Notes: a model not told the origin generated them from the letters alone. A stretch of DNA of 64,000 nt from Octopus sinensis (GCF_006345805.1 NC_043002.1:51956001-52020000); one strand, 5' to 3'. Shown: positions 2,169 to 59,090, counted from the first letter of the stretch. Numbers and translations are program-made.

Positions 2169-2262
<94 letters not shown>

Positions 2263-2264
<2 letters not shown>

Positions 2265-2660
2265 CGCAGGAGTGGCTGTGTGGTAAGTAGCTTGCTAACC
2301 AACCACATGGTTCAGTCCCACTGCGTGACATCTTGGGCAAGTGTCTTCTGCTATATGAGTGGATTTGGTAGACGGAAACTGAAAGAAGCCTGTCGTATAT
2401 TTGTATATATATATATATATACGTGTGTGTGTGTGTGGTGTGTGTGTGTATTTGTGTGTCTGTATGTGTCCCCCTAGCATTGCTTGACAACCGATGCTGG
2501 TGTGCTTACGTCCCCGTCACTTAGAGGTTCGGCGAAAGAGACCAATAGAATAAGTACTGGGCTTACAAAGAATAAGTCCCGGGGTCGATTGGCTCGACTA
2601 AAGGCGGTGCTCCAGCATGGCCACAGTCAAATGACTGAAACAAGTAAAAGAGTAAAAGTG
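2263..2660 (+). mobile_element. tRNA-derived SINE, family A, with internal (TA)n(TG)n tract
   Basis: Head GGCGCAGGAGTGGCTGTGTGG with A/B-box-like motifs, CTTGGGCAAGTGTCTTC core, tail CCAGCATGGCC.CAGTCAAATGACTGAAACAAGTAAAAGA. More than ten related copies occur in the window. Confidence 0.85.
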
Positions 2661-5189: not shown

Positions 5190-5637
5190 CCTTTCTACTA
5201 CAGTAAAAAAGCCTGAAATTTTGGGAGAAGGTGATAGTTGATTACATCGATCCAAGTGCTCAAATGGTACTTATTTTATACAGCCCGAGAGGATAAAAGA
5301 CGAAGTCGACCTCGGCGGAATTTGAACCCAGAGCGTAAGGACGGGAGATATGCTGCTAAGCATTTTGCCAGGATTGCTGACGATTCTGCTTGTTCGCCGC
5401 CTTGAATGGTTTTGTAATATTGGTTTCAAATTATGACACATGGCCAGGAATTTTATGGGAGGGTGCTAGTCGATTACATCGACCCCAATGTTCAACTGGT
5501 GCTTAATTTATCGACCTCCGGAAGGGATGAAAGGCAAAGTCTACCTCGGTGGAATTTGAACACAGTACGTGCAGACAGATGAAATGCCGCTAAGTATTTT
5601 GCCCAGCGTGCAAACGATTCTGCCAGCTCGCCATCTT
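5190..5637 (-). mobile_element. Two tandem SINE family B copies
   Basis: Reverse complement of GGCGAGCTGGCAGAATCGTT...GAGGTCGACTTTGCCTTTCATCCTTTCGGGGTCGATAAA..AAGTACCAG. The central block resembles the MetaSINE core (from memory). Confidence 0.8.
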
Positions 5638-5871: not shown

Positions 5872-6749
5872 TACATAATTCCTCGTCTCTTAAATATAGA
5901 ACTGCATTTCTATCCTTATTTGTATTTATATTCATGAAAAATATATCTACCAAATATTATCATATAGTCGAAGCGCACGTAAATAGGGTTTAAATGTAAT
6001 ACAAAAATTCCATTCTTAGACTAGATATGTGTATGTGTGTGTATGTAGATATATATATAAACATACATATATGCATACGTGCACATACGCATAAGCACAT
6101 ATGTGTGGCGCGAGTGTGTGTGTGTTTGTGTGTGTGTGTCTGCATGTATATATATATAAGAAAACGGAGGAGGAGAATTTCGGTCTCCACGTTGTGAGTT
6201 GTAATTCGAAAAATATATAAAAGAAAAGAAAAATGCACACAGTTTACATAGTTTTAATATATTTGTAAATACATTTTATAAGTGAGATAGTATTGCGTTT
6301 GTCGACCGCTAACGCTTTCGCTAATCATGACATTGAAATTATTGTAATTTCGTTTTCTCATAAGATCTTGGATGTTCTTGGAAGGAAGTTTGTGAATGAA
6401 TCAACAACTAGAAAAATCTAAGGGCAGGTAAACTGGCGATCGTTATTATTCGGAACAGGGGAGGTAATTTCTCATTGTTTTTGTTTTTTTGCAGGGGAGG
6501 ATAAATTATTATATAAAAACTCAAAAACTAAAGTAATGAGATGATATATGTACAGTGATGGATATGTGATCATGAATTAGAATATATACTGAGACCAAAG
6601 TTGGTTATGCGTTCATATTTAGGCGTGTTCTGTATTTTCTTCGATAAATAACTTTTTTTTTGTTTGTTTAAGCGCTCTTGTACAGAAATTATTTCTTTGC
6701 ACTGGTAGATGGAGAAAACTGTAAAGTTTGGTTGGATATTACCTGCACA

Positions 6750-6782
<33 letters not shown>

Positions 6783-6799
6783 AAAAGAATAAAAGAATA

Positions 6800-6970
6800 T
6801 ATATTTCTTTACTGCCCACAAGGGGTTAAACACAGAGGGGACAAATAAGGACAGACAAAGGGATTAAGTCGATTACATCGACCCCAGTGCGAAACTAGTA
6901 CTTTATTTATCGACCCCGAAAGGATGAAAGGCAAAGTCGACCTCGGCGGAATTTGAACTCAGAACGTAAA
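6800..6970 (-). mobile_element. 5'-truncated SINE family B, tail variant B2
   Basis: Family B core plus tail TTTGTCCCCTCTGTGTTTAACCCCTTGTGGGCAGTAAAGAAATA; 5' junction abuts (GATA)n at about 6975-7025. Confidence 0.85.
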
Positions 6971-6972
6971 AG

Positions 6973-7025
<53 letters not shown>

Positions 7026-8994: not shown

Positions 8995-9392
8995 TCTTTT
9001 CTACTCGAGGGACAAAGGCCCGAAATTTTTGGGGAGGAGGCAAGTCGATTACATCGGCTCCAGTACGAAACTGGTTCTTAATTTAATCGACCCCGAAAGG
9101 ATGAAAGGTAAACTCGACCTAGGCGGGATTTGAACTCAGAACGTAACGACAGACGAAATACCTATTTCTTTGCTACCCACAAGTGGCTAAACACAGAGAG
9201 GACAAACAAGAACAGACAAATGGATTAAGTCGATTAAATCGACCCCAGTGCATAACTGGTACTTATTTAATCGACCCCGAAAGGAGGAAAGGCAAAGTCG
9301 ATCTCGACGGAATTTGAACTCAGAAAGTAAAGACAGACGAAATCCCGCTTAGCATTTCGCCCGGCGTGCTAACATTTCTGCCATCTCGCCAC
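8995..9392 (-). mobile_element. SINE family B dimer (B1 and B2 tail types)
   Basis: Two consecutive family B cores; the B2 tail joins at the GACGAAATAC motif of the neighbouring copy. Confidence 0.8.
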
Positions 9393-10000
9393 CTTACACC
9401 ATGAAATAGGAATATTATCAAAAGGTATTCAGAGAAGTAGCATTATACAAGAAATAAGACAGTGTAAGTTTGAGTACACATCTTTCAAATGCAATTAGCA
9501 TGTGTGCATCCTAAAATTTAGGGTTGCAAACCCATAAAAAGTCACAGCTAAAGCGCAGATCAAAAGATTATTCGGTTTACCAGTGTCGTGTTATAAGTCT
9601 ACTCAATCAGAATTGCCCTAGGATACAAATCAATCATTTATATGAATTACCGAGAGAAATAATTTAATAAGTACTACAAAGAGCTTGCTGAGAAACTGAG
9701 ATAAAAATGACAGAATTGAGTCATGGGGGTAGTAAATAACATCAAAAGATTACCAAAGTTTATTGGGCCGAGAAAAGGAAGGAAATTTTAGATGTGACAA
9801 AAATAAAAACCTATATCTCCAATTTGAAAGAAGATTTAGTCTTGATCGCAGAGAACGAACAGCATGTATGGACGAGTTTAAATAAAGATTTATAGCACAA
9901 ACAATTAATTCAAGCTTCCTCAGAGAATTAAAAAAAGACACTATTGTAATAAGAAGTAAAATGAGAATTTAATTAAGTCAGACTATATAAGACATTACGT

Positions 10001-17391: not shown

Positions 17392-17670
17392 AAAGGCGGC
17401 AGAAACGTTAGCATGCAGGGCGAAATGCTTAGCAGTATTTCGTCTGCCGCTACGTTCTGAGTTCAAATTCCGCCGAGATCGACTTTGCCTTTCATCCTTT
17501 CGGGTTCGATTAAATAAGTACCAGTTACGCACTGGGGTCGATATAATCGACGTCATCCGTTTGTCTGTCCTTGTTTGTTCTCTCTGTGTTTAGCCCCTTG
17601 TGGGTAGTACAGAAATAGGTATTTCGTCTGCCGCTACGTTCTGGGTTCAAATTCCGCCGAGGTCGATTTT
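17392..17670 (+). mobile_element. SINE family B (B2 tail) followed by a partial second head
   Basis: GGCGGCAGAAACGTTAGC...GGTTCGATTAAATAAGTACCAG...TTTAGCCCCTTGTGGGTAGTACAGAAATA. Confidence 0.8.
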
Positions 17671-20021: not shown

Positions 20022-20218
20022 GGGCGGCAAGCTGGCAGAACCGTTGCCACGGCAAGCGATAATGCTTAGCGGCATTTTATCTAAGTTCAGAAATCGCGTG
20101 TTGACTTTGCCTTTCATCTTTTCGGGGTCGATAAAGTAAGTACTAGTTACGCACTGGGGGCGATGTAATCGACTAGCCTCCTCCCACAAAATCTAGGCCT
20201 TGTGCCTATAGTAGAAGG

Positions 20219-21247: not shown

Positions 21248-22279
21248 ATATGTTTGACTTTTGCTTTGTAGTTGTACAAGTTGACTCCAAATTTCACCCA
21301 GACACCTCAAGAGACAAGTTAGAAGTTCAAGTTGGTGTTATGCCTAGGATGTCATATATTTGGTTTGGCACATAGTATCATTCTAGAGAATGTTTAAGAA
21401 AACATAAGAAAATTATAAGTTTGTTTTAAAATTTGAAATTACATAGATAATATTTTACGTAGGATATGGGCAGTTCCCATGAGCACTATCTTTTGAATTT
21501 CTGCCAGTTTGGGGTTTCGTGGTATCTGAGCTAGGTAAGAATCAGCCCCTTTTTCTGTTATTCCTAGGACGCTTATGACAACAGGTATTGTTTTAGTCTT
21601 GAGGTTCCACATTTTGCCAATTTCTATTTCAAGATCTTTATACTTGCTAAGTTTTTGGTAGGTCTTAGCAGATACATTTATGTCGATTGGGACAGTCATA
21701 TCAATGAGGAGGCATTATTTTTGTTTGAAGTCTTTCAATATAATGTCTGGCCTATTCTCATCTTTCTTTCTGTCAATTTGAACGGCGAAGTTCCAGAGGA
21801 GTGAGATGTGGTCATTTTCAAGCACTGGAGGTGGTTTGTGTTCCCACCAGTTTTTATCGTGGGGCAGATCCAGGTTTTTTCAAATTACCCAGTGAATATA
21901 CTGTGCTGCTCTATCATGACTTTTGAGATACTCTGAAGGCGCAAGAAGACTGCATATGGAGACAACATGATCAATGATTTCATTTTGTTGTTTACATACA
22001 CGACATGTTGGGCTACGGCCGTTCTTTAATATGTTGACCTGGTAGTTCCTTGTAGGTAGGCATTGATCTTGAACTGCTATGATAAACCCTTCTGTTTCTA
22101 ATTTTAAGCAAGACGACACTAACCATTGATGGGTAAGGGCTTTGTCAATATCGGCATTATTACCTATCTTTGGATATTTGCCATTGAGAGATTTTTCTTG
22201 CCATTTATCAGTAAGAATATCTAAGGCAGTAGTTTTTGCGCGGGTTTTCATACGCATAGCTTTTTCTGTGCTTGTTTAT

Positions 22280-34028: not shown

Positions 34029-34720
34029 TCAATATAGGGTGGCAAAAAAATTTTGTAGAATTTTTTGCCACCAGCGGCCTAGTGGGAAAAAATTAAATAG
34101 TCATAGACCATTTTTAAGTTCAACATCAACAATCAAGGAACGGCCATAATAGGCCATTCACCCACTAGAAATAACAGCCAAAGCTTCAACCGCAAATAAA
34201 AATTAATTCCGTAAACCAGGAGAAAATTTAAAAAACATTTACCCTGTAATTACAGGGTAAATGTTTTTTAAATTTTCTCCTGGTTTACGGAATTAATTTT
34301 TATTTGCGGTTGAAGCTTTGGCTGTTATTTCTAGTGGGTGAATGGCCTATTATGGCCGTTCCTTGATTGTTGATATATATATATATATTATATATATATA
34401 TTTACCCTGTAATTACAGGGTAAATGTTTTTTAAATTTTCTCCTGGTTTACGGAATTAATTTTTATTTGCGGTTGAAGCTTTGGCTGTTATTTCTAGTGG
34501 GTGAATGGCCTATTATGGCCGTTCCTTGATTGTTGATATATATATATATATATATATACGACGGGCTTCTTTCAGTTTCCGTCTACCAAACCCATTCACA
34601 AGGCTTTGGGTGGCCCGTGGCTATAGTAGAAGACACTTGCCCAAGGTGCCACTCAGTGGGACTGAACCCAGAACCATGTAGTTCGTAAACGAGTTACTTA
34701 CCACACAGCACTCCTACACC
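33450..34720 (-). mobile_element. SINE family A segments; one copy is split by a palindrome-containing insert in its (TA)n
   Basis: 3' halves at about 33450-33630 and 33780-33935; 5' half at 34557-34720. Confidence 0.8.
34125..34537. repeat. Perfect 250-bp palindrome (34125-34374) plus exact 138-bp tandem copy (34400-34537)
   Basis: Centre ACCCTGTAA|TTACAGGGT with no spacer; 125-bp arms with no mismatch seen; 34400-34537 equals 34237-34374. Confidence 0.93.
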
Positions 34721-37399: not shown

Positions 37400-38045
37400 T
37401 ATCCTCAACAGGGCTGCCTACTCAATGATCTCATGTCGCTTGATCTTGATGCAATAGCCATCAGCAAGATTAAGATTTCCGTCAAGTGGTCCCTTGCACT
37501 TCAAACTAACAACGAAGAGTTGATATCTTTTTGTTGACCTGGATCGTATGAGGAGTTAATGTTGTTTAGGAAAGGACTAGGACTTGAGTTAAGACGAGCT
37601 TTTAGGGACTTGGGGTCTGGTTGGAGTCAAATATTCAGGTGGATAGGAACAGGGGCCAGATTATGATTAGGCTGACCAGTCTTACCAAAATATTGACTGA
37701 ACGAAATTTACTGAATGATCGAGAAGAAATGGTCAATTGTAACATAATCACTTTAATACGTAATCGCCTGACCAACACACCTCAATTCAGATTTCATCTG
37801 GCCAGCCTTCGATGTCTACCCTTTCGCTTCTTTTGGAAGCGTCGGGTTCTTCTGACCAAAAGGTTCACCTGCCACCAACACCTTCACGGAAGGCTCTGTT
37901 TTCCATGGTTGATGATGCACAGACATACACTGAAGTTAGAGTATTTAGAAAGATTTCCAAACGGTGATCCGTTTGTGAAACACACTCTATCACCATTTGT
38001 GTCTTTGACAGAGCTGCAGTTCTAGATCAAGTGAAGACCAATATT
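37400..38045 (+). mobile_element. Old decayed Tx1-clade LINE relic
   Basis: FRFFWKRRV...CHQH..GRLCFPWLMMHRHTLKL...PFVKH...VSLTELQF aligns with the 44929-46041 ORF. The upstream LLNDLMSLDLDAIAI may be an endonuclease N-terminus (weaker). Confidence 0.7.
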
Positions 38046-39559
38046 AAATATCTGACAAATGGAATGTTCTCAAGCGCTCACACTCCTCTATTATTCAAGT
38101 AGCACGTTGGTAAAAGATATTCTCGACTACCATTCTATGGAGACTGTGTAGCGTATATGGGCGACAATATACTCTGTGACACGCTGGGGTCATCATAGAA
38201 CACCTAAGCAAACTATTCTGGAGGATTTTTGTGTCTGAGAATATGGGTATCTTTTTGTTTCATAAACAAATAACTACCTAACAGACGGGAAAAAAAGCGA
38301 GCATATTTTTTTTCACGCAAAGGAATTTTGGAACCAAAATATAAATTATATGGAGGTGTGATCGTCAACAGAAAGATAGTGATTTTAAATCTTGAAAGAA
38401 TATCATCAACTCCGATGCAGACACGTAGGGAAGGATAGAAAGTTATATAAAGACGAAGGAACTGTAGAAAAGATTATTATACTTCAAATAGGGACAACTT
38501 AAAAATTTACTGAACATAAATCATTGTAATTTTGAATCTTGTAAGAATCTCATCTCCGATAAAACTGAGTTCTTTCAATCATGTATATTTACACTATATA
38601 ACCAAGCTTCTGTGATCTATTTTTGCTTAAAGACTTGTGAGATTTTTGTCTGTAAACCTATTTTGCTTATTTTAAAATATCATTCATGTTATTGGACCCA
38701 GCGGTATCGTTTTGTGTCTGTTCTGGATTGTGATAGGATTGGCTCGAAATCAAACAAAATAAGCGAACTCGGCATTAGCAGCTAACGAAATGTTCGTTTT
38801 TCTTACATTCATGAAGATGAAACTTTTCCAGCATGTTGAACTTACTTTTGACTAGGTGAATTGGTGGTGGTTAATACTTAAATAAGGACACAGCGCAGTT
38901 TTAGAGACAAGATACGAACCACCAAGTCCTCTTGGAAATATATACCATATTATATTTAGGTGAGTAATATCATTTATTAGGCGTATAGATGACGAGTTGG
39001 TAGAGTCGTTAGCGTGTCGGATAGAACGCTTTGTGATACACTTTCCGACATTCTGAGATCAAAATTACCTTTCCTTCTTTGAAGAATCGATAAATTAAAT
39101 ACCAATCCAGTACTGGAATCTATACGTCTTCTCTGGAAGAAATTGGCGTATTCAGACCTGGAGAGGGAAAGAGCTCCTCCGTGTTTAACATATCCGAGAC
39201 ACGCTGTATGTCATGACAACCCTGCGATTCCATCATTAATAAAGGACCCCAAGATATTAGGTATATGTAAGCATATTCATTTCAATATAAATGGTAAAAT
39301 GAATATATTTATGTCACCCTGCACTTTACTGAATTAACATGTTAATTCACCGTTGTGTGGTCTTTTCTATTATTTTAGACGATCATCCGTTTTCAAAACT
39401 AGATTACATGAGAATAAGTTGCACTGGAGTCTCTTTCTTCTTTTATTGGCCTAAGACTGATAAATAACTAAGAATTATGCCCAGAATATCTATTACGTAC
39501 CCCTGACGTGTTTCTGATAACAAATGAACTAAAGAATTTACCCACACACACATACACGT

Positions 39560-40269: not shown

Positions 40270-41915
40270 AGAATGAATTTTGACCGGTAGCAAGGTTGTG
40301 TTCATCAGCCTCTAAATCTTATAAAAGATCTTACAGATTTTTATAGTCTCAGCTATCGTGATCAGTTTTAGTTTATGAATTGAAGATTTGCGTACTCTCC
40401 CAAAGAACACAAGTTCAGTCATACTTTGCTCCAGATGAGTTGGTATGTATCCTCTTGTTCCAATGATAATAGGTATGAAGCTGAATGTATATCTTGGATA
40501 CTGGATTTGCAAGCTCCATATCAATGGTCCATAGATGTCCTCTTTCTCCTTTATTTTTCTAACTACATTGGTGTCCAGAGGGCAGCTGATTTCCTCTATG
40601 TATGTATGTATGTATGTATGTATGTATGTATGTATGTATGTATGTATGTATGCATGCATGCATGCATGTATGTATGTATGCATGCATGTATGTATGCATG
40701 TATGTATGCATGTATGTATGTATGCATGCATGTATGCATGTATGCATGCATGTATGTGTGTGGGTATGTATGTATTATGTATGTATGTATGTATGTATGT
40801 ATGTATGTATGTGCATACGTGTGTGCGTGTGTGTTTAGTGTTATTAGAAGCACAGCCTGCCGCATTGTCGGGCCGTTGACGACTAATCCGGCACCCCTAC
40901 CAAGCCTGCTTTTTCTTTGATTTCCAAAGAGGTATCTATATCTGTAGGGCAGCTGACCTCTATGATGGTACATGCTTTTGCCCCTCTGTCCCAAGCAACA
41001 ATATCGGCCTGCTATGTTTACATTTTTTAACAGAAGATTCGATGGGAATATTCCACCAGTATTCCTTGAGTTGGAATTTATGAATGTATTCCATAACAGA
41101 GGGATTTTCTAAGTTTATTTCAGGATAGACTTTTTGGCGGATGGCATTATAAATTGTTTTAGCAACAACATTGTGCCACATAAAGAGGTAGTACCGTGAC
41201 GACATTTTAGGGCAGCTGCTAATCACATGCGTGATGTCTTCCGCAGAAACATGACATAGCCTACACATGCGGTTGCACCTTGGGATTACAAGAACATGAC
41301 TATCTTTCTTGTTCACCAGGTACTTTGTATCTCTTGTTCTTGGATTGCAAACGCTTAGCCCTCAAAGTGTGATGTGATGCAGTGGTCTTGTGTCCAAGAG
41401 AGGCTACGCTTCATGTCAATTCTACTGTCTTCTTCAAGATTCCGGGCAACATACCCATGCATAGTCTTTTTTTTTTTGTATGCTGAGTGCTCTCCATCCA
41501 GGTCTGCTCTGAGGTAAGAGAATCCAGCTGTTTTGGGGCTGTATAGATCATCAGGAAGAGACTACTTCTTGAGGTGCTCACTGCCAGCTCGTACAATGTT
41601 GCTCAATTCACTTTCCAGCACTGCATTTATATATTTATTTATGCTGCTGTTGTTTAGCAAGTGCTGCCTGAGTGATACCATACTGCATTCGAAGGCCTTC
41701 CGCATTGATCTCAGACGTCTACCACCTTCATTGCTTCTTAGGTAGAGCCTATCAACATTATCATAGTAATGCTGTTTCTGTGGAGGTTGTAAGTTGTTGT
41801 CACGATTTTGTTGGTTTTGATATCTATGGAGTGGATTTCCTCTACAGATCAATCAAGTATCCCAAATGTTGGGATCAACTCTATTCCTTGTGTGTGTGTA
41901 TGTGTGTGTGTGTGT

Positions 41916-41952
<37 letters not shown>

Positions 41953-42400
41953 ATTTGCAAGCTCCATATCAATGGTCCATAGATGTCCTCTTTCTCCTTT
42001 ATTTTTCTAACTACATTGGTGTTCAGAGGGCAGCTGATTTCATCTATGTATGTATGTATGTATGTATGTATTCTCTTACATTTTTAATTGTTTGAAGTAT
42101 TTTAAGGAAGGAGATGGTTTAAGCCAAAGATACAAAGCTCCATTGTTGGAATGAAAATAATAAAAACAAATTCACATTTCGAACTCGAGAAAAGTTTCGC
42201 ATATTTTTATTGCTCTATTTACAGATTGTATTTGCATTGTGCAGATCAGTTGGTTAATTTCTTTTTCTTGAAATGCTAAATAGGTATTTACCCACAAAAC
42301 CAGAGCACCAATTATTATTGTTGTTAATATAAATTTATAGTCTAGGTATAGAAACTTGTGGTTTCGAAGCAACAGTCTTTTGTTGTCCAAATTCATTCAC
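40270..42400 (-). mobile_element. Mosaic of decayed restriction-like-endonuclease LINE fragments
   Basis: DNVDRLYLRSNEGGR, CRLCHVSAEDITHVISSC (CCHC), HSRP/IIEVSCP and EEISCPLDTNV...FIPIIIGTRG fragments, separated by (TATG)n and (TG)n. Confidence 0.8.
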
Positions 42401-42509
42401 AACGCTTTGGTCGGCTCGAGGTTATTGTAGAAGACACATGTCCAAGGTATCACGCAGTGGGCTTGAACCCGGAACCATGTGGTTGGGAAGCAAATTTCTT
42501 ATCACATAT

Positions 42510-42655
42510 ATTTCTTTATTGCCCACAAGGGGCTAAACATAGAGGGGACAAACAAGGACAGACAAACGGATTAAGTCGATTACATCGACCCCAGTGCGAA
42601 ACTGGTATTTTATTTATCGACCCCGAAAGGATGAAAGGCAAAGTCGACCTCGGCG
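42510..42655 (-). mobile_element. 5'-truncated SINE B2 nested in the head of a family A SINE
   Basis: Family A head is split at CATA (42375-42510 and 42655-42680). Confidence 0.8.
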
Positions 42656-43003
42656 CATAGCCACGCCTGCGCCCTTGTATGTGAATGCCTCTGATCGCTG
42701 TATATCAGTTTACCACTGTCTGTCGTCGCGTACGTATATATATGTATATCATACATGTATATATATACATATCGTATATATATCGTATACATATATGTAT
42801 ATCATATATGTGATTATGCAAGAGAGAGGTCTTCACGTAAAGCAAGTTAAAAGAAGTTATGACAGTGAGAAAGAGAGAAAGAAAGCTTCAGAAAATGTTC
42901 GAATGTGAAAGAGGGAAAGATGGAGTGCATGCTGAAGTGTGTGTGTGTATGTGTGTGCGTGCGTGTGTGTGTGCGTGCGTTACTGGTAGTGTCTAGCTGT
43001 ATG

Positions 43004-44170: not shown

Positions 44171-44475
44171 TGAAAGTGCGAATGAGTGGAAGTGCGTGCG
44201 GTCATGTATATGCGTGTGTGTTAATATTGCACATTCTGTGCGTTTGTGTATGTGTATGTGTGTGCGTGTGCGTGCGTGCGTGTGTGCGCGTGCCTTCGTG
44301 TGTGTGTGAGGAACAAAATGCGAACGAGCAAAAATTAAAGATGACAGAAGAGAAAGGCAGAGACTGACAGGCATTGACAGACAGATAGATGAAGAGTTGA
44401 AGAATGTGACGATGAGACAGTTACATATGGTGGCAGTGGTTGCAAGGACGATGGTAGATAGATAGAGAGAGAGAG

Positions 44476-44530
<55 letters not shown>

Positions 44531-44534
44531 TAGA

Positions 44535-46040
44535 TATGTTTCTTTATTAGCCACACAGGGCTGCACACAGATAGAACAAATTACAAGGTAGAGCTTTTCT
44601 TTTGAAGGTTTAAAAAAAAAAAAAGAAAAAGAAAAGAAAAAAGGAAGGGGGGAGTTTCGATCAAAAGGGATCGTAAAAGGAGAGAAAGAGGACAAAAAGA
44701 AGGGGGTTAAAAAAAAAGGGGGAGAGGAAAAAAAAAAATTTGATCAATAGGGATCGTTATCACAGAAATGTCAATATGAAGTGTAAAGGGGAGGACAGGT
44801 GAGGTTTACCCGTGGAAAGAAAAGCCTACGGAAAAGACCACGGTAACCTCGGTCAATGGAGTCACATGTTATATTTCTTTTTTTTTTTTTTTTGCAAATA
44901 AGCAACTCTCTGTTTTCAATTTCTGGGTTCATAGGATCATGCTCAAGGTGGCTTCGTCATTCATACGTGCCATTCTTGCTACATTCACCCATCTTTTTTT
45001 AAAACATTCGCTAGACAAAACTTGCCTCTCTACTCTCACTTTCATTTTCAAGTGGTACTTGAAGAAGTTGATGAGAGATTGACCAGAGAGGAAAGTGTTT
45101 GTCTCCAATCCTTTCAGACGCGTCCACCAGATACATTCTTTCGCCATAGCCACAAGGATGATGAAAATAGCTCTTCCTTCCCGTTTGAAGGAGGGAGGCG
45201 TGACAATATTAACGATAGACTCAGCTGATAAACCGACTCGTCCCACACGTGACAGCAGTTGTTCGACACAAGCCCACAGGTCGGAAATTGTTGGACACTG
45301 CACGAGTGCGTGCAGAACGGTTTCGTCGCTCTGACCGCATCTCGGGCAGGTCGGCCCCGTGTTTCTCGAGCCGTGTCTGTAGAGCTTATCCCGAACGGGT
45401 AGCGCTTCTCGGTAGCACTGCCAGGCCAGGGATCTCTGGAAGTTGTCCATGGGCCCTGGCCCGAAAGTCGTCCTGAACAGGCGGGTCAGGTACTCCTCGT
45501 CGACGTCCAGGTTCGCCCCGAGCTCGTCGTCGTACCTCCCCTCCACTAAACCCCTATAGAATGCTTTGGTTGTGTTGAAGTCACTCAAGGTCGACCCAGG
45601 ACGGCAGAGTTGCTTGAGAGCAACGCGACACTCGCGGTGCCATTCGCCCTTCTTCGGCCTCTTTTTGATCCACGACTGCAGTTCGGTCATGGAGACGAGC
45701 TGCGGGAAAGCGTGCCTCACAAACGGCGACCACACCTGTTCACCGTCGTCTACATAGAGCCAGAGATGTCGCAGTCTCAGCGCGTGTCTGCGCATCATCA
45801 ACCACGGCATGCCCAGCCCTCCTTTTAACGGGTGTTGACAGCAAATGGATCGCCTGACCATCGGGACGCATCCTTTCCACAAGAAGCGAAAGAGAATGCG
45901 TTGTAGTTTGGTGATGGTAGGGTCGGGACAAGGTACGACGGTCAGGCGGTAGTAGATGACGGACGCGATGTACGTGTTCGCCACCTCCGCCCGACCTTTT
46001 AGGGACAGTTTCCTCTCGGCCCATTGCCGGGCGAGAGTGA
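44535..46040 (-). mobile_element. Young 5'-truncated Tx1-clade (L1 superfamily) LINE inserted in (GATA/GACA)n
   Basis: Uninterrupted ORF2 C-terminal part, about 390-bp 3' UTR ending AATAAAGAAACATA. (TCTA/TCTG)n lies directly on both sides in the same orientation. Confidence 0.9.

Positions 46041-46041
<1 letters not shown>
44929..46041 (-). CDS. Tx1-like ORF2 C-terminal 370 codons (post-RT region with zf-RVT-type CCHC knuckle); no start codon
   Basis: [27 protein letters not shown] and [18 protein letters not shown] motifs; no internal stop; visibly GC/CpG-rich relative to flanks. Confidence 0.85.
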
Positions 46042-46761
<720 letters not shown>

Positions 46762-47454
46762 GTTCTAAGCAGTGTTGCAGGAGGTGAAGAAGAAGAAAAA
46801 AAAAATAGTGGCGACGGTGAAGGAAGTAATTTTTAAATAATTTAAAGGTGGGTTGGAGTGCAATGTTTTTGAGGCCAGAAGTTGGAGCTGCAGAATTGGA
46901 GAAAGCTGTCACAATCGAAGGATTTACGATTGTTATCTGCGAATGACAAGAAGCAAAGCCAATTTAGACGTCTAACATGTTGGGCGTGCCAGCGGTCGAG
47001 ATTATTATTTGAGGGTGTAAGATTATAAGAGAGTCGAAAATGAGATTTCTTCTGAACTTATTTCTCTACGAGTCTAGTCTAGTCTAGAAAGATTTTTTTT
47101 CTTTCTTATTTTTCTCTTCGTTTCTTCTTATTTTTCTCCTCCTCTTTCTTCTTCTTCTCCTTCCGTTTCTTATTCTTCCTCTTTATTCTCAGAGCAAAAG
47201 CTAACTTTAAACTAGGTGAACTTACTGAACTGATGAAATCAGAAACTGTCTGCATTTTGCTCTTTTCTTTCTCACTCTGGTCGCGTTGGTGGCGGGTAGG
47301 GTGGGAGGGAACGTATACGGATGGCATATGTATGAGTGCGTGCGCGTATGTATGTGTGTGTGTGTGCATGTGTGTATATGTGTATGTGTGTGTATACATG
47401 TGTGTGTCTGTATGTGCGCATGTTTTTTTGTATGGATTATGCATATATTCTTTC

Positions 47455-48247
47455 ATTTCTTTCAGTCATTTGACTGCGGCCATGCTGGGGCCGCGCTTTT
47501 AGTCGGACAGATCGACCCCAGGACTTTTTTTTTGTAAGCCTAGTACTTATTTTATTGGTCTCTTTTGCCGAACCGCTAGATTACGGTGACGGAAACACAC
47601 CAACATCGGTTGTCAAGCGATGGTGGGAGGGGACCGAAATTGCGAAGATGATCCGGTTCTTGACTGAAGATCGAAGGCTTCGAATGTTACGTCCGTTTTT
47701 TTGTATCGTCTTCTAAATGTTTTGCGTTCTTGTCCCAGTTTGTGTTTTTTTATATTTACCTATATATATATATATATACTGTTTTACTGTTTTACTTGTT
47801 TCAGTCATTTGACTGCGGCCATGCTGGAGCACCGCCTTTAGTCAAGTAAATCGACCCCAGGACTTATTCTTTGTAAGCCTAGTACTTATTCTATCGGTCT
47901 CTTTGACGAACCGCTAAGTGACGGGGACATAAACACACCAGCATCGGTTGTCAAGCGATGTTGGGAGGACAAACACAGACACACAAACACACACACATAT
48001 ATATATATACACATATACATATATACGACGGGCTTCTTTCAGTTTCCGTCTACCAAATCCACTTACAAGGCTTTGGTCGGCCCGAGGCTATAGCAGAAGA
48101 CACTTGCCCAAGGTGCCACTCAGTGGGACTGAACCCAGAACCATGTAGTTCGTAAACGAGTTACTTACCACACAGCACTCCTGCGCCTAATATATATATA
48201 TATACGACGTATATATATATATTATATATTATATATATATATATATA

Positions 48248-58204: not shown

Positions 58205-58362
58205 ACCTGGATAATAACCTTATAGTAGGCTTTCCAAATCTCTTCTACAGATATCGGTTACCACATTCTATCATACAGCAGGGATTCTCCTTTTACTGGA
58301 TATTTATGTGGAAATCCATTAACATTTGCAGATATTTCCTGTTTTATAAATTACATATATAT

Positions 58363-58592
58363 ATATTTCTTTACTACCCACAAGGGGCAAAACAGAGGGG
58401 GACAAACAAGGACAGACAAACGGATGAAGTCGATTATATCGACCCCAGTGCGAAACTGGTACTTTATTTATCGACCCCGAGAGGATGAAAGGCAAAGTCA
58501 ACCTCGGCAGAATTTGAACTCAGAACGTAATGACAGATGAAATATGGCTACGCATTTCGCCCGGCGCGCTAACGTTTCTGCCAGCTCGCCAC
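58363..58592 (-). mobile_element. Young full-length SINE B2 in an intron
   Basis: CpGs intact; TTACATATATATATAT on both sides, consistent with a target-site duplication. Confidence 0.85.
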
Positions 58593-59090
58593 CTCAACAT
58601 TACATATATATATATATATGATCATTTTAGTGTTTACTTTTCCAAACTTGAAGAGTCAAACAGAGTTTACTGTGGTCAGATGCCTTTCCTGTCATCAACC
58701 CTTCCCTGCTTCCAAGCAAGGTGATATTTCCCTATGCCCAGACATGTTTTTTTATGTCTTTTGTAGAATAATGACTGTGTGTGTATGTGTGTGTGCGTGC
58801 GTGTGTGATTTTCTGCTTGTGTTTGTTCCCTGGCCACTGCTTGACAACTGGCATCGGGTTCTTTGTGTCTCTGGAATTTAACAGTTCGGCAAAAGAGACC
58901 AACAAAATAAGCACCAGGCTTAAAAAGAATAGCTACAGGATCAATTCAGTTGACTAAAATTCAAGGCAGTGCCCCAGTATGGCCACAGTCTAATGAATGA
59001 AACAAAAGATAAAAGATACAGACATAATTCAGATTGGAGAGAAATTAGTTCCCTCATTAGAGAAAGATCTTATGCTTAATATATATAGAC

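Follow-up and report, generated by a model that had tools for sequence, protein, structure and literature searches.

The borrowing of the 3′ end of a partner long interspersed element (LINE) by short interspersed elements (SINEs) belongs to textbook knowledge (Ohshima et al., 1996; PMC3747384). Among described systems, UnaL2/UnaSINE1 of eel, belonging to the L2 clade, represents an experimentally tested pair of the stringent type (Kajikawa and Okada 2002, in PMC3747384), while for the L1 clade a 3′ hairpin shared with SINEs is documented in maize (ZmSINE2/3 and LINE1-1_ZM) and in Chlamydomonas (SINEX-3_CR and L1-1_CR) (PMC3472496, PMC3747384). The survey of 58 pairs contains L1-clade representatives from maize, sorghum, and Chlamydomonas alone, with no Tx1, no animal L1-group, and no mollusc pair (PMC3747384). 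A Tx1-clade LINE was likewise proposed as a SINE mobiliser in crocodilians, the link between SINEU and Tx1-Mar being shared target preference (Mariner-N4_AMi) combined with poly(A) ends of the SINE (Kojima 2015, PMC4494074). Within the host group considered here, SINEs OK, OR1, and OR2 with box A/B-like head were reported (Ohshima and Okada 1994), to which our elements are compared by description only. The RepeatMasker classes tRNA-Core and tRNA-Deu dominate octopus genomes (PMC8967140), and none of the papers on octopus repeats, in which SINEs are left unclassified or assigned to tRNA-Core or tRNA-Deu, gives a partner, one of them highlighting an RTE element as active LINE (PMC8967140, PMC13282606, PMC9115989); since the published classes bear no LINE-tail suffix, no partner is assigned to them. 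A study of SINE partners in bivalves makes no mention of Tx1, and no published LINE partner of octopus SINEs was found in the literature searched; Repbase or Dfam may already hold one. Here, we address the relation between a SINE subfamily designated B2 and a LINE of the L1 group, which reside in a 64,000-nucleotide stretch of the Octopus sinensis genome (GCF_006345805.1 NC_043002.1:51956001-52020000), referred to as the window and numbered from its first letter. About a tenth of an octopus genome consists of SINEs, whose expansion characterises the lineage. The principle of borrowing the LINE 3′ end is known; an octopod pair with a LINE of the L1 group would be new.

Like UnaL2/UnaSINE1, the octopus elements possess a common terminal module of about 50–60 nt, which probably includes a small conserved stem-loop and, in the LINE copies, precedes a short repeat, and the SINE copies, like those of UnaSINE1, show target site duplications (TSDs) and 5′ truncations. 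Unlike the eel pair, the octopus LINE is assigned to the L1 group, the repeat is (TCTA)n or (ATT)n versus (TGTAA)n, and the pair is known from sequence alone. With the maize and Chlamydomonas pairs it has in common a sequence-specific L1-group 3′ end (not mere poly-A) shared with SINEs, tRNA-derived there and putatively so here, and a likely hairpin with compensatory changes, whereas those pairs originate from plants and green algae and end with (T)n or (A)n. In contrast to SINEU/Tx1-Mar, no shared specific target is seen for the octopus pair, which is linked by the 3′ tail.

The elements under comparison are the 5′-truncated LINE copy with its surroundings and the B2 copies, four of which lie on the minus strand and one on the plus strand:

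44929..46041, minus strand, C-terminal part of the second open reading frame (ORF2) of the 5′-truncated LINE, about 370 aa, uninterrupted, stop codon at 44929-44931
44588..44928, minus strand, remainder of the LINE 3′ untranslated region (UTR), about 340 nt, low complexity
44535..44587, minus strand, 3′-terminal LINE tail of about 53 nt, homologous to the B2 tail, sense strand ACCTTGTAATTTGTTCTATCTGTGTGCAGCCCTGTGTGGCTAATAAAGAAACATA
44456..44534, minus strand, (TCTA)/(TCTG)n microsatellite immediately following on the last LINE nucleotide, read directly, corresponding to the terminal repeat type of the LINE
46039..46760, minus strand, (TCTA)/(TCTG)n tract of about 0.7 kb abutting the truncated LINE 5′ end, oriented as the 3′ tail repeat
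42507..42654, minus strand, 5′-truncated SINE B2 inserted in a SINE of another family, the copy originally compared with the LINE
58364..58598, minus strand, full-length SINE B2 with perfect 14-bp TSD TATATATATGTAAT (58350-58363, 58599-58612)
6798..6966, minus strand, 5′-truncated SINE B2 with 8-bp TSD TTCTTTTA (6790-6797, 6967-6974)
8996..9393, minus strand, B2-B1 dimer composed of a B2 unit (9163-9393) and a 5′-truncated B1-type unit, B1 tail near 8996-9011
17395..17670, plus strand, second copy of the B2-B1 dimer, truncated at 17670, with the same junction (17609-17630)

Gapless superposition of plus-strand positions 44535-44580 (LINE end) and 42507-42552 (SINE B2 end) gives 35/46 identical nucleotides, with CAAGG reached past a 3-nt gap on the LINE side, exactly as claimed in the first-pass annotation of the window. 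The tail motif TTGTGGSYARTAAAGAAA is present at 6804, 9165, 17598, 42511, and 58366, in agreement with the B2 positions listed there (about 6800, 9165, 17570, 42510, and 58363), and also at 44539 in the LINE. Since the LINE and the SINE copies near 6800, 9163, 42507, and 58364 are all on the minus strand, the compared stretches represent 3′ ends of both elements.

To assign 44535 as the LINE terminus, as was done initially from the window itself, contigs encoding close homologues of the ORF2 fragment were compared over their 3′ UTRs. The total length of the 3′ UTR in the window, from the stop codon to 44535, is about 390 nt. Two contigs, L009 (82% protein identity) and L011, are collinear with it from the stop codon on and share the nearly identical block TTGACCGAGGTTACCGTGGTCTTTT...TTTCTTTCCACGG.TAAACCTC; collinearity with L011 extends through the terminal 75 nt to its end ...TTCTGTGCTGAGCACTGCGTGAATAATAAAAAAGAA followed by (TCTA)n, and L009 covers the first 20 nt of the tail, where the contig stops. 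The 3′ UTRs of the second subfamily (L001, L002, L003, and L004) differ from this one but are homologous among themselves and to that of L008a, and they show the same terminal motif wherever the terminus is reached, with L004 ending in ...GGGCCCTTGTGGCCAATAAAAGAAATC(ATT)n and L003 from Argonauta in ...GTCCCCTCTATGTTTTTGCCCTTGTGGCTAATAAAAGAAATA(ATT)4. In another Argonauta contig, L008, one LINE ends with ...TTCTGTGTCAGCCAGGTGGCTAAGAAAGAAAT, and directly after it a heavily 5′-truncated, 3′-UTR-only LINE copy is found, ending in ...TTCTGTGTCGGCCCTTGTGGCTAATAAAGAAATCTAT. The tail is thereby carried by the independent LINE copies L002, L003, L004, L008a/b, and L011, and altogether eight LINE 3′ ends from at least five assemblies and two genera show it, each time closing a collinear 3′ UTR; L001, L007, and L010 stop short of the LINE terminus and stay outside the 3′-end comparison, and in the more distant LINE of L005 and L006 the 3′ end was not identifiable. 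The recurrence of one motif at the end of independent copies, including those from Argonauta hians, bears out the initial choice of terminus, and the tail is an intrinsic and conserved end of the LINE family.

Two trivial explanations of the tail match were weighed against this background. The window is 63% A+T and rich in simple repeats, so that two A/T-rich, low-complexity ends might in principle look alike by chance; however, when the SINE tail was shuffled 200,000 times with dinucleotides preserved, 35 identities were never attained (mean 13.6, maximum 28), and when all 46-mers from both strands of the window were scored against this tail, values above 26 were produced only by the five SINE B2 copies (37–46) and by the LINE end at 44535 (35), which is the top non-SINE 46-mer, the best unrelated one scoring 26. 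The degenerate tail motif has 8 matches (with no more than 3 mismatches) versus 0.54 expected, and it is seen again at LINE and SINE ends of another genus. Coincidence can hence be given virtually no weight, and the match is confirmed as real. The other explanation treats 44535-44587 as a short, diverged, 5′-truncated fragment of SINE B2 that landed beside the LINE by accident. SINE copies are indeed very dense in the window, 5′-truncated B2 copies do exist, and the low-complexity 3′ UTR of the window aligns poorly with some relatives; against this stand the sharing of the entire 3′ UTR with L009 and L011, collinear from the stop codon into the tail, and five further LINE copies, some of them from Argonauta, which end with the same motif after their own 3′ UTRs. 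With the tail intrinsic to the LINE, the idea of a stray SINE fragment is therefore set aside as very improbable.

The similarity was quantified on consensus tails by semi-global alignment, with z calculated against dinucleotide shuffles, the material comprising eight LINE 3′ termini and some 35 tails of SINEs:

B2 consensus and window LINE tail, 38/53, z = 10
B2 consensus and Argonauta LINE L003, 40/52, z = 8.7
B2 consensus and LINEs L004, L008b, and L011, 33/51 to 41/59, z = 5.9-6.7
Argonauta SINE tail and Argonauta LINE L008b, nearly identical, z = 14.3

This comparison with shuffled tails, suggested in the first-pass annotation as a check, thus turned out positive. An exact 15-mer, GTCCCCTCTATGTTT, is common to the Argonauta LINE L003 and the SINE copy at 42507. 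In Argonauta, two loci spanning 25 kb together yielded over 12 SINE copies with bodies of at least two types, all ending in ...TTCTGTGTTCGGCCCTTGTGGCTAATAGAGAAATCTAT, and one of these body types is homologous to the body of Octopus B2; judged by tail alignment, the LINE–SINE pairing looks cleaner in this second genus than in Octopus. Identity to the B2 consensus tail comprises 72% for the LINE copy in the window and 77% for the Argonauta copy. With no more than this degree of identity, the window LINE is a relative of the tail source and not the source itself.

All tails share a common layout, namely, a predicted 4-bp G+C-rich stem closed by the loop CUUGU (6 nt in the window LINE) and followed by AAUAAAGAAAU:

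44549..44562, minus strand, predicted hairpin of the window LINE, AGCC-CUGUGU-GGCU, stems AGCC / GGCU, 6-nt loop (CUGUGU), present in the minimum-free-energy fold
Octopus B2 hairpin, stems GCCC / GGGC, loop CUUGU
LINE L004 hairpin, stems GGCC / GGCC, loop CUUGU
Argonauta SINEs and LINE hairpin, stems GGCC / GGCU, loop CUUGU

Across 28 homologous LINE and SINE tails, 85% of stem cells are paired versus 6-48% with the partner strand slid, and one lineage-wide double change, GC to CG, is found in B2. Addition of B1 and B3 tails (see below) gives 82% of paired cells and double changes at all four pairs, for a set that assumes homology not demonstrable here. The hairpin is recovered in most minimum-free-energy folds; an extended lower helix (UCUGUGU with AAUAAAGA) emerges in some predicted folds, and it was set aside since indels shift the register between families. 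Although not proven, the hairpin is likely, and it is of a kind typical for stringent-type LINE ends. In the window LINE it is followed by AAUAAAGAAACAUA containing the AAUAAA signal, which would direct cleavage of the LINE transcript, synthesized by RNA polymerase II, just downstream. Genomic LINE copies carry no poly(A), as would fit reverse transcription starting at the tail or the terminal repeat and not at a poly(A) tract. The terminal repeat itself varies, being (TCTA)(TCTG)n in the window copy, (TCTA)n in its subfamily mate L011, and (ATT)n in the other subfamily; because L011 ends likewise, (TCTA)n can be regarded as a tail type proper to the element. In Argonauta, TCTAT closes the SINEs and one LINE copy alike.

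As for the nature of the LINE, its ORF2 in the window contains the zf-RVT CCHC domain (Pfam PF13966, E = 3.3e-08), and a single tblastn segment matches residues 547-912 of P0013 at 69% identity. Homologues of this fragment are 61-82% identical to it, one being a protein of Octopus bimaculoides and others including those of Argonauta hians. The nearly full-length Argonauta copy L003 encodes a 639-aa upstream ORF, which has no Pfam match and is presumed to be ORF1, and ORF2 with APE endonuclease (PF03372), RVT_1 (PF00078), and zf-RVT (PF13966) domains. The best solved relative of ORF2 is human L1 ORF2p (E = 3e-50), with R2 at 4e-24, while the NCBIfam search gave a weak match to group II intron reverse transcriptase only, and none of the 342 relatives collected in a homologue search with P0002 bears a clade name. 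When metagenome contigs, a collection evidently without cephalopod DNA, were searched with an ORF2 C-terminal profile, no relative emerged. Among LINE classes recently active in Octopus vulgaris, we take the combination of APE, reverse transcriptase, and zf-RVT to be present only in L1-Tx1. Classes reported as such comprise RTE, Dong-R4, CR1, L1-Tx1, Hero, and R2 (PMC13282606), L1-Tx1 being the sole L1-group class reported in octopus (PMC13282606, PMC8967140). The element thus belongs to the L1 group, probably to the class L1-Tx1, and the initial designation “Tx1” is borne out to the L1-group level only. As a separate observation, cephalopod LINE fragments occur in public metagenome assemblies (L001, L002, L004, L009, and L010; P0006), one of them annotated as a protein of a Herbaspirillum metagenome-assembled genome, which points to contamination with host DNA.

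SINE B2 is a short dispersed non-coding repeat with TSDs of 14 and 8 bp, at least five copies of which are found within 64 kb along with more than 12 copies of B1 and B3. Its head contains the A-box-like TGGCAGAA and the B-box-like GAGTTCAAATTCC; a putative tRNA origin rests on these box motifs and on the octopus SINE literature (PMC8967140). The body is common to B2 and the more numerous B1 up to ...CACTGGGGTCGATGTAATCGACTTA, the end point of the shared part being also read as ...GGGGTCGATGTAATCGACTTA with the LINE tail module following in B2, and only B2 continues for further ~65 nt ending in ...TTTGTCCCCTCTGTGTTTAGCCCCTTGTGGGCAGTAAAGAAATA. Presumably, this body resembles a CORE-type octopus SINE. 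In the dimer at 8996..9393, the B2 and B1 units are joined by AAAGAAATAGGTATTTCGTCTG at 9150-9173, and because two dimers share an identical junction with the B2 tail internal and the B1 tail terminal, the dimeric source element itself was copied. The TSDs of 14 and 8 bp together with 5′ truncations are compatible with the action of an APE-type LINE through target-primed reverse transcription. The (GATA)n tract pointed out earlier at the 5′ junction of the 6800 copy does adjoin it; since the 8-bp TSD TTCTTTTA separates the repeat from the SINE, it belongs to neighbouring DNA and is not a junction feature. A second abundant SINE family is also seen in the window (2262-2660; 42400-42506 with 42655-42690; 47420-47630), with head GGCGCAGGAGTGGCTGTGTGGTAAG... 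and a different tail, ...GGCCACAGTCAAATGACTGAAACAAGTAAAAG, one of its copies having received the B2 insertion at 42507.

The tails of B2 and LINE are homologous, lie in register at both 3′ termini, and are conserved across LINE copies and two octopod genera, and the SINE copies are flanked by TSDs; a LINE–SINE partnership is thus well supported at the family level. Recognition of the tail by ORF2p and the LINE subfamily that acted as driver are inferred. It is quite likely that a B2-type SINE carries the tail module of an octopod L1-group LINE and is recognised through it in trans by the ORF2 protein. According to this scheme, LINE RNA would end with a ~50-nt module consisting of a pyrimidine-rich run, the 4-bp G+C stem with CUUGU-type loop, AAUAAAGAAAU, and a short closing repeat that is (TCTA)n or (ATT)n according to subfamily. 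Attachment of this module to a SINE body would give rise to the B2-type SINE, and, by analogy with experimentally tested pairs of the stringent type, the ORF2 protein, combining APE and reverse transcriptase, would recognise the 3′ module on SINE RNA in trans, nick the target, and prime reverse transcription there, leaving 5′-truncated copies and TSDs of variable length. The earlier claim that a Tx1-type machinery mobilises B2 is therefore retained with respect to the conserved 3′ tail shared at the family level and abandoned with respect to the window LINE as its source, given the 72% identity. The shared tail points to an L1/Tx1-type family as partner of at least B2-type SINEs in Octopus and Argonauta, and it offers a concrete RNA element, the hairpin with GAAA-rich end, as a target for mutation in retrotransposition assays. 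The tail is further relevant to whether sequence-specific 3′-end recognition is ancestral in the L1 group, as asked by Ohshima (2012/2013), earlier examples being confined to plants and algae.

Several observations weigh against such partnership. The closest LINE tail recovered is only 77% identical to the Octopus B2 tail, so that the direct source subfamily is not among the recovered copies, and Octopus B2 ends with ...GAAATA(TA), without (TCTA)n or (ATT)n, unlike the LINE copies. Fold energy of the tails is no better than that of shuffles (z = -0.1 to -1.5), and compensatory changes backing the hairpin arose independently just once or twice. No tRNA is detected in the SINE head by ARAGORN or Rfam (E <= 1), and the putative placement within the Tx1 clade follows from domain architecture and elimination, not from a tree. 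The screen covered eight LINE 3′ ends, with those of RTE, CR1, and Dong-R4 outside the comparison, among which a better match may occur. One may accordingly suppose that the likeness of tails is a relic of common descent or of a SINE captured by the LINE, B2 being mobilised by RTE, CR1, or Dong-R4. The modest identity of the best LINE tails (72-77%) and the lack in B2 of the terminal repeats of LINE copies would agree with this, and the three clades are abundant or recently active in octopus (PMC13282606, PMC9115989). On the other hand, in Argonauta the tails of SINEs and LINE are almost the same (z = 14.3), indicating ongoing sharing, the likeness falls in register at the extreme 3′ terminus, the site of recognition, and no tail of another clade is attached to the motif in the loci examined. 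We consequently rate a relic as rather unlikely and favour mobilisation of B2 by the L1-group LINE family.

The situation is different for the subfamilies B1 and B3, found at 20200, 21111, 22594, and 25500 (B1) and at 5441, 50744, and 63900 (B3). The B1 tail has the form ...CCCCTCCCCCAAAATTTCAGGCCTTGTGCCTATAGTAGAAAGG(ATT)n, also read as ...CAGGCCTTGTGCCTATAGTAGAAAGG(ATT)n, and the third variant, B3, ends in ...TGGTCTTGTGCCAAAATTTGAAACCA. Both exhibit the stem-CTTGT-stem design with differing stem sequences, AGGC/GCCU in B1 and UGGU/GCCA in B3. Semi-global alignment of B1 and B3 tails with octopod LINE tails revealed no significant similarity (z <= 3.1), and demonstrable derivation of these tails from the LINE family was dropped on this ground; to the end of a cuttlefish LINE relative, L012 (36% protein identity), they are weakly similar (z about 3.2). 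Close to its 3′-UTR terminus, at about 6560-6620, this relative bears CTCGGCCTTGTGCCACATTTGTAC, and it is cited also as carrying GGCCTTGTGCC. In the first-pass annotation, B1 with its (ATT)n tail was ascribed to another partner. This is weakened by the (ATT)n end that B1 has in common with L003 and L004, members of the same LINE family; B1 may use a sibling of this family or a LINE of a different clade. A (TAA)n end is a known trait of R4-clade elements. In O. vulgaris, Dong-R4 shows very high activity (PMC13282606). Given one hairpin design with covarying stems in the tails of B1, B2, and B3, and GGCCTTGTGCC in the cuttlefish relative, a single L1/Tx1-type LINE family, recognised via the stem-CUUGU-stem and GAAA-rich 3′ end, might drive the octopod-specific SINE explosion, B1 and B3 included. 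We put this forward as a tentative and somewhat doubtful proposition, which, if true, would give the first description of sequence-specific (“stringent”) 3′-end recognition for an animal L1-group LINE.

The LINE copy ending at 44535 is embedded on both sides in a (TCTA)/(TCTG)n microsatellite matching its own tail repeat, with nothing LINE-like upstream of the 46039..46760 tract, unlike other LINE and SINE copies, whose flanks are unrelated. This single case may reflect insertion into a tail-matching target via annealing of the tail repeat or, alternatively, its expansion. Another LINE fragment, degraded and located at 37609-38109 (plus strand), has 45% protein identity to the same ORF2 region, and its 3′ end was not located in the too degraded downstream sequence. 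Two more ORF fragments on the minus strand, 21883-22275 and 40963-41361, the latter adjoining a (TACA/TGCA)n tract, show sub-threshold zf-RVT matches and are both followed by sequence typical of another retroelement C-terminus. Finally, perfect inverted repeats are located at 34125-34537, where the arms 34125-34249 and 34250-34374 are 100% complementary without a spacer and 34125-34262 pairs with 34400-34537, representing either a perfect palindrome or an assembly artefact.

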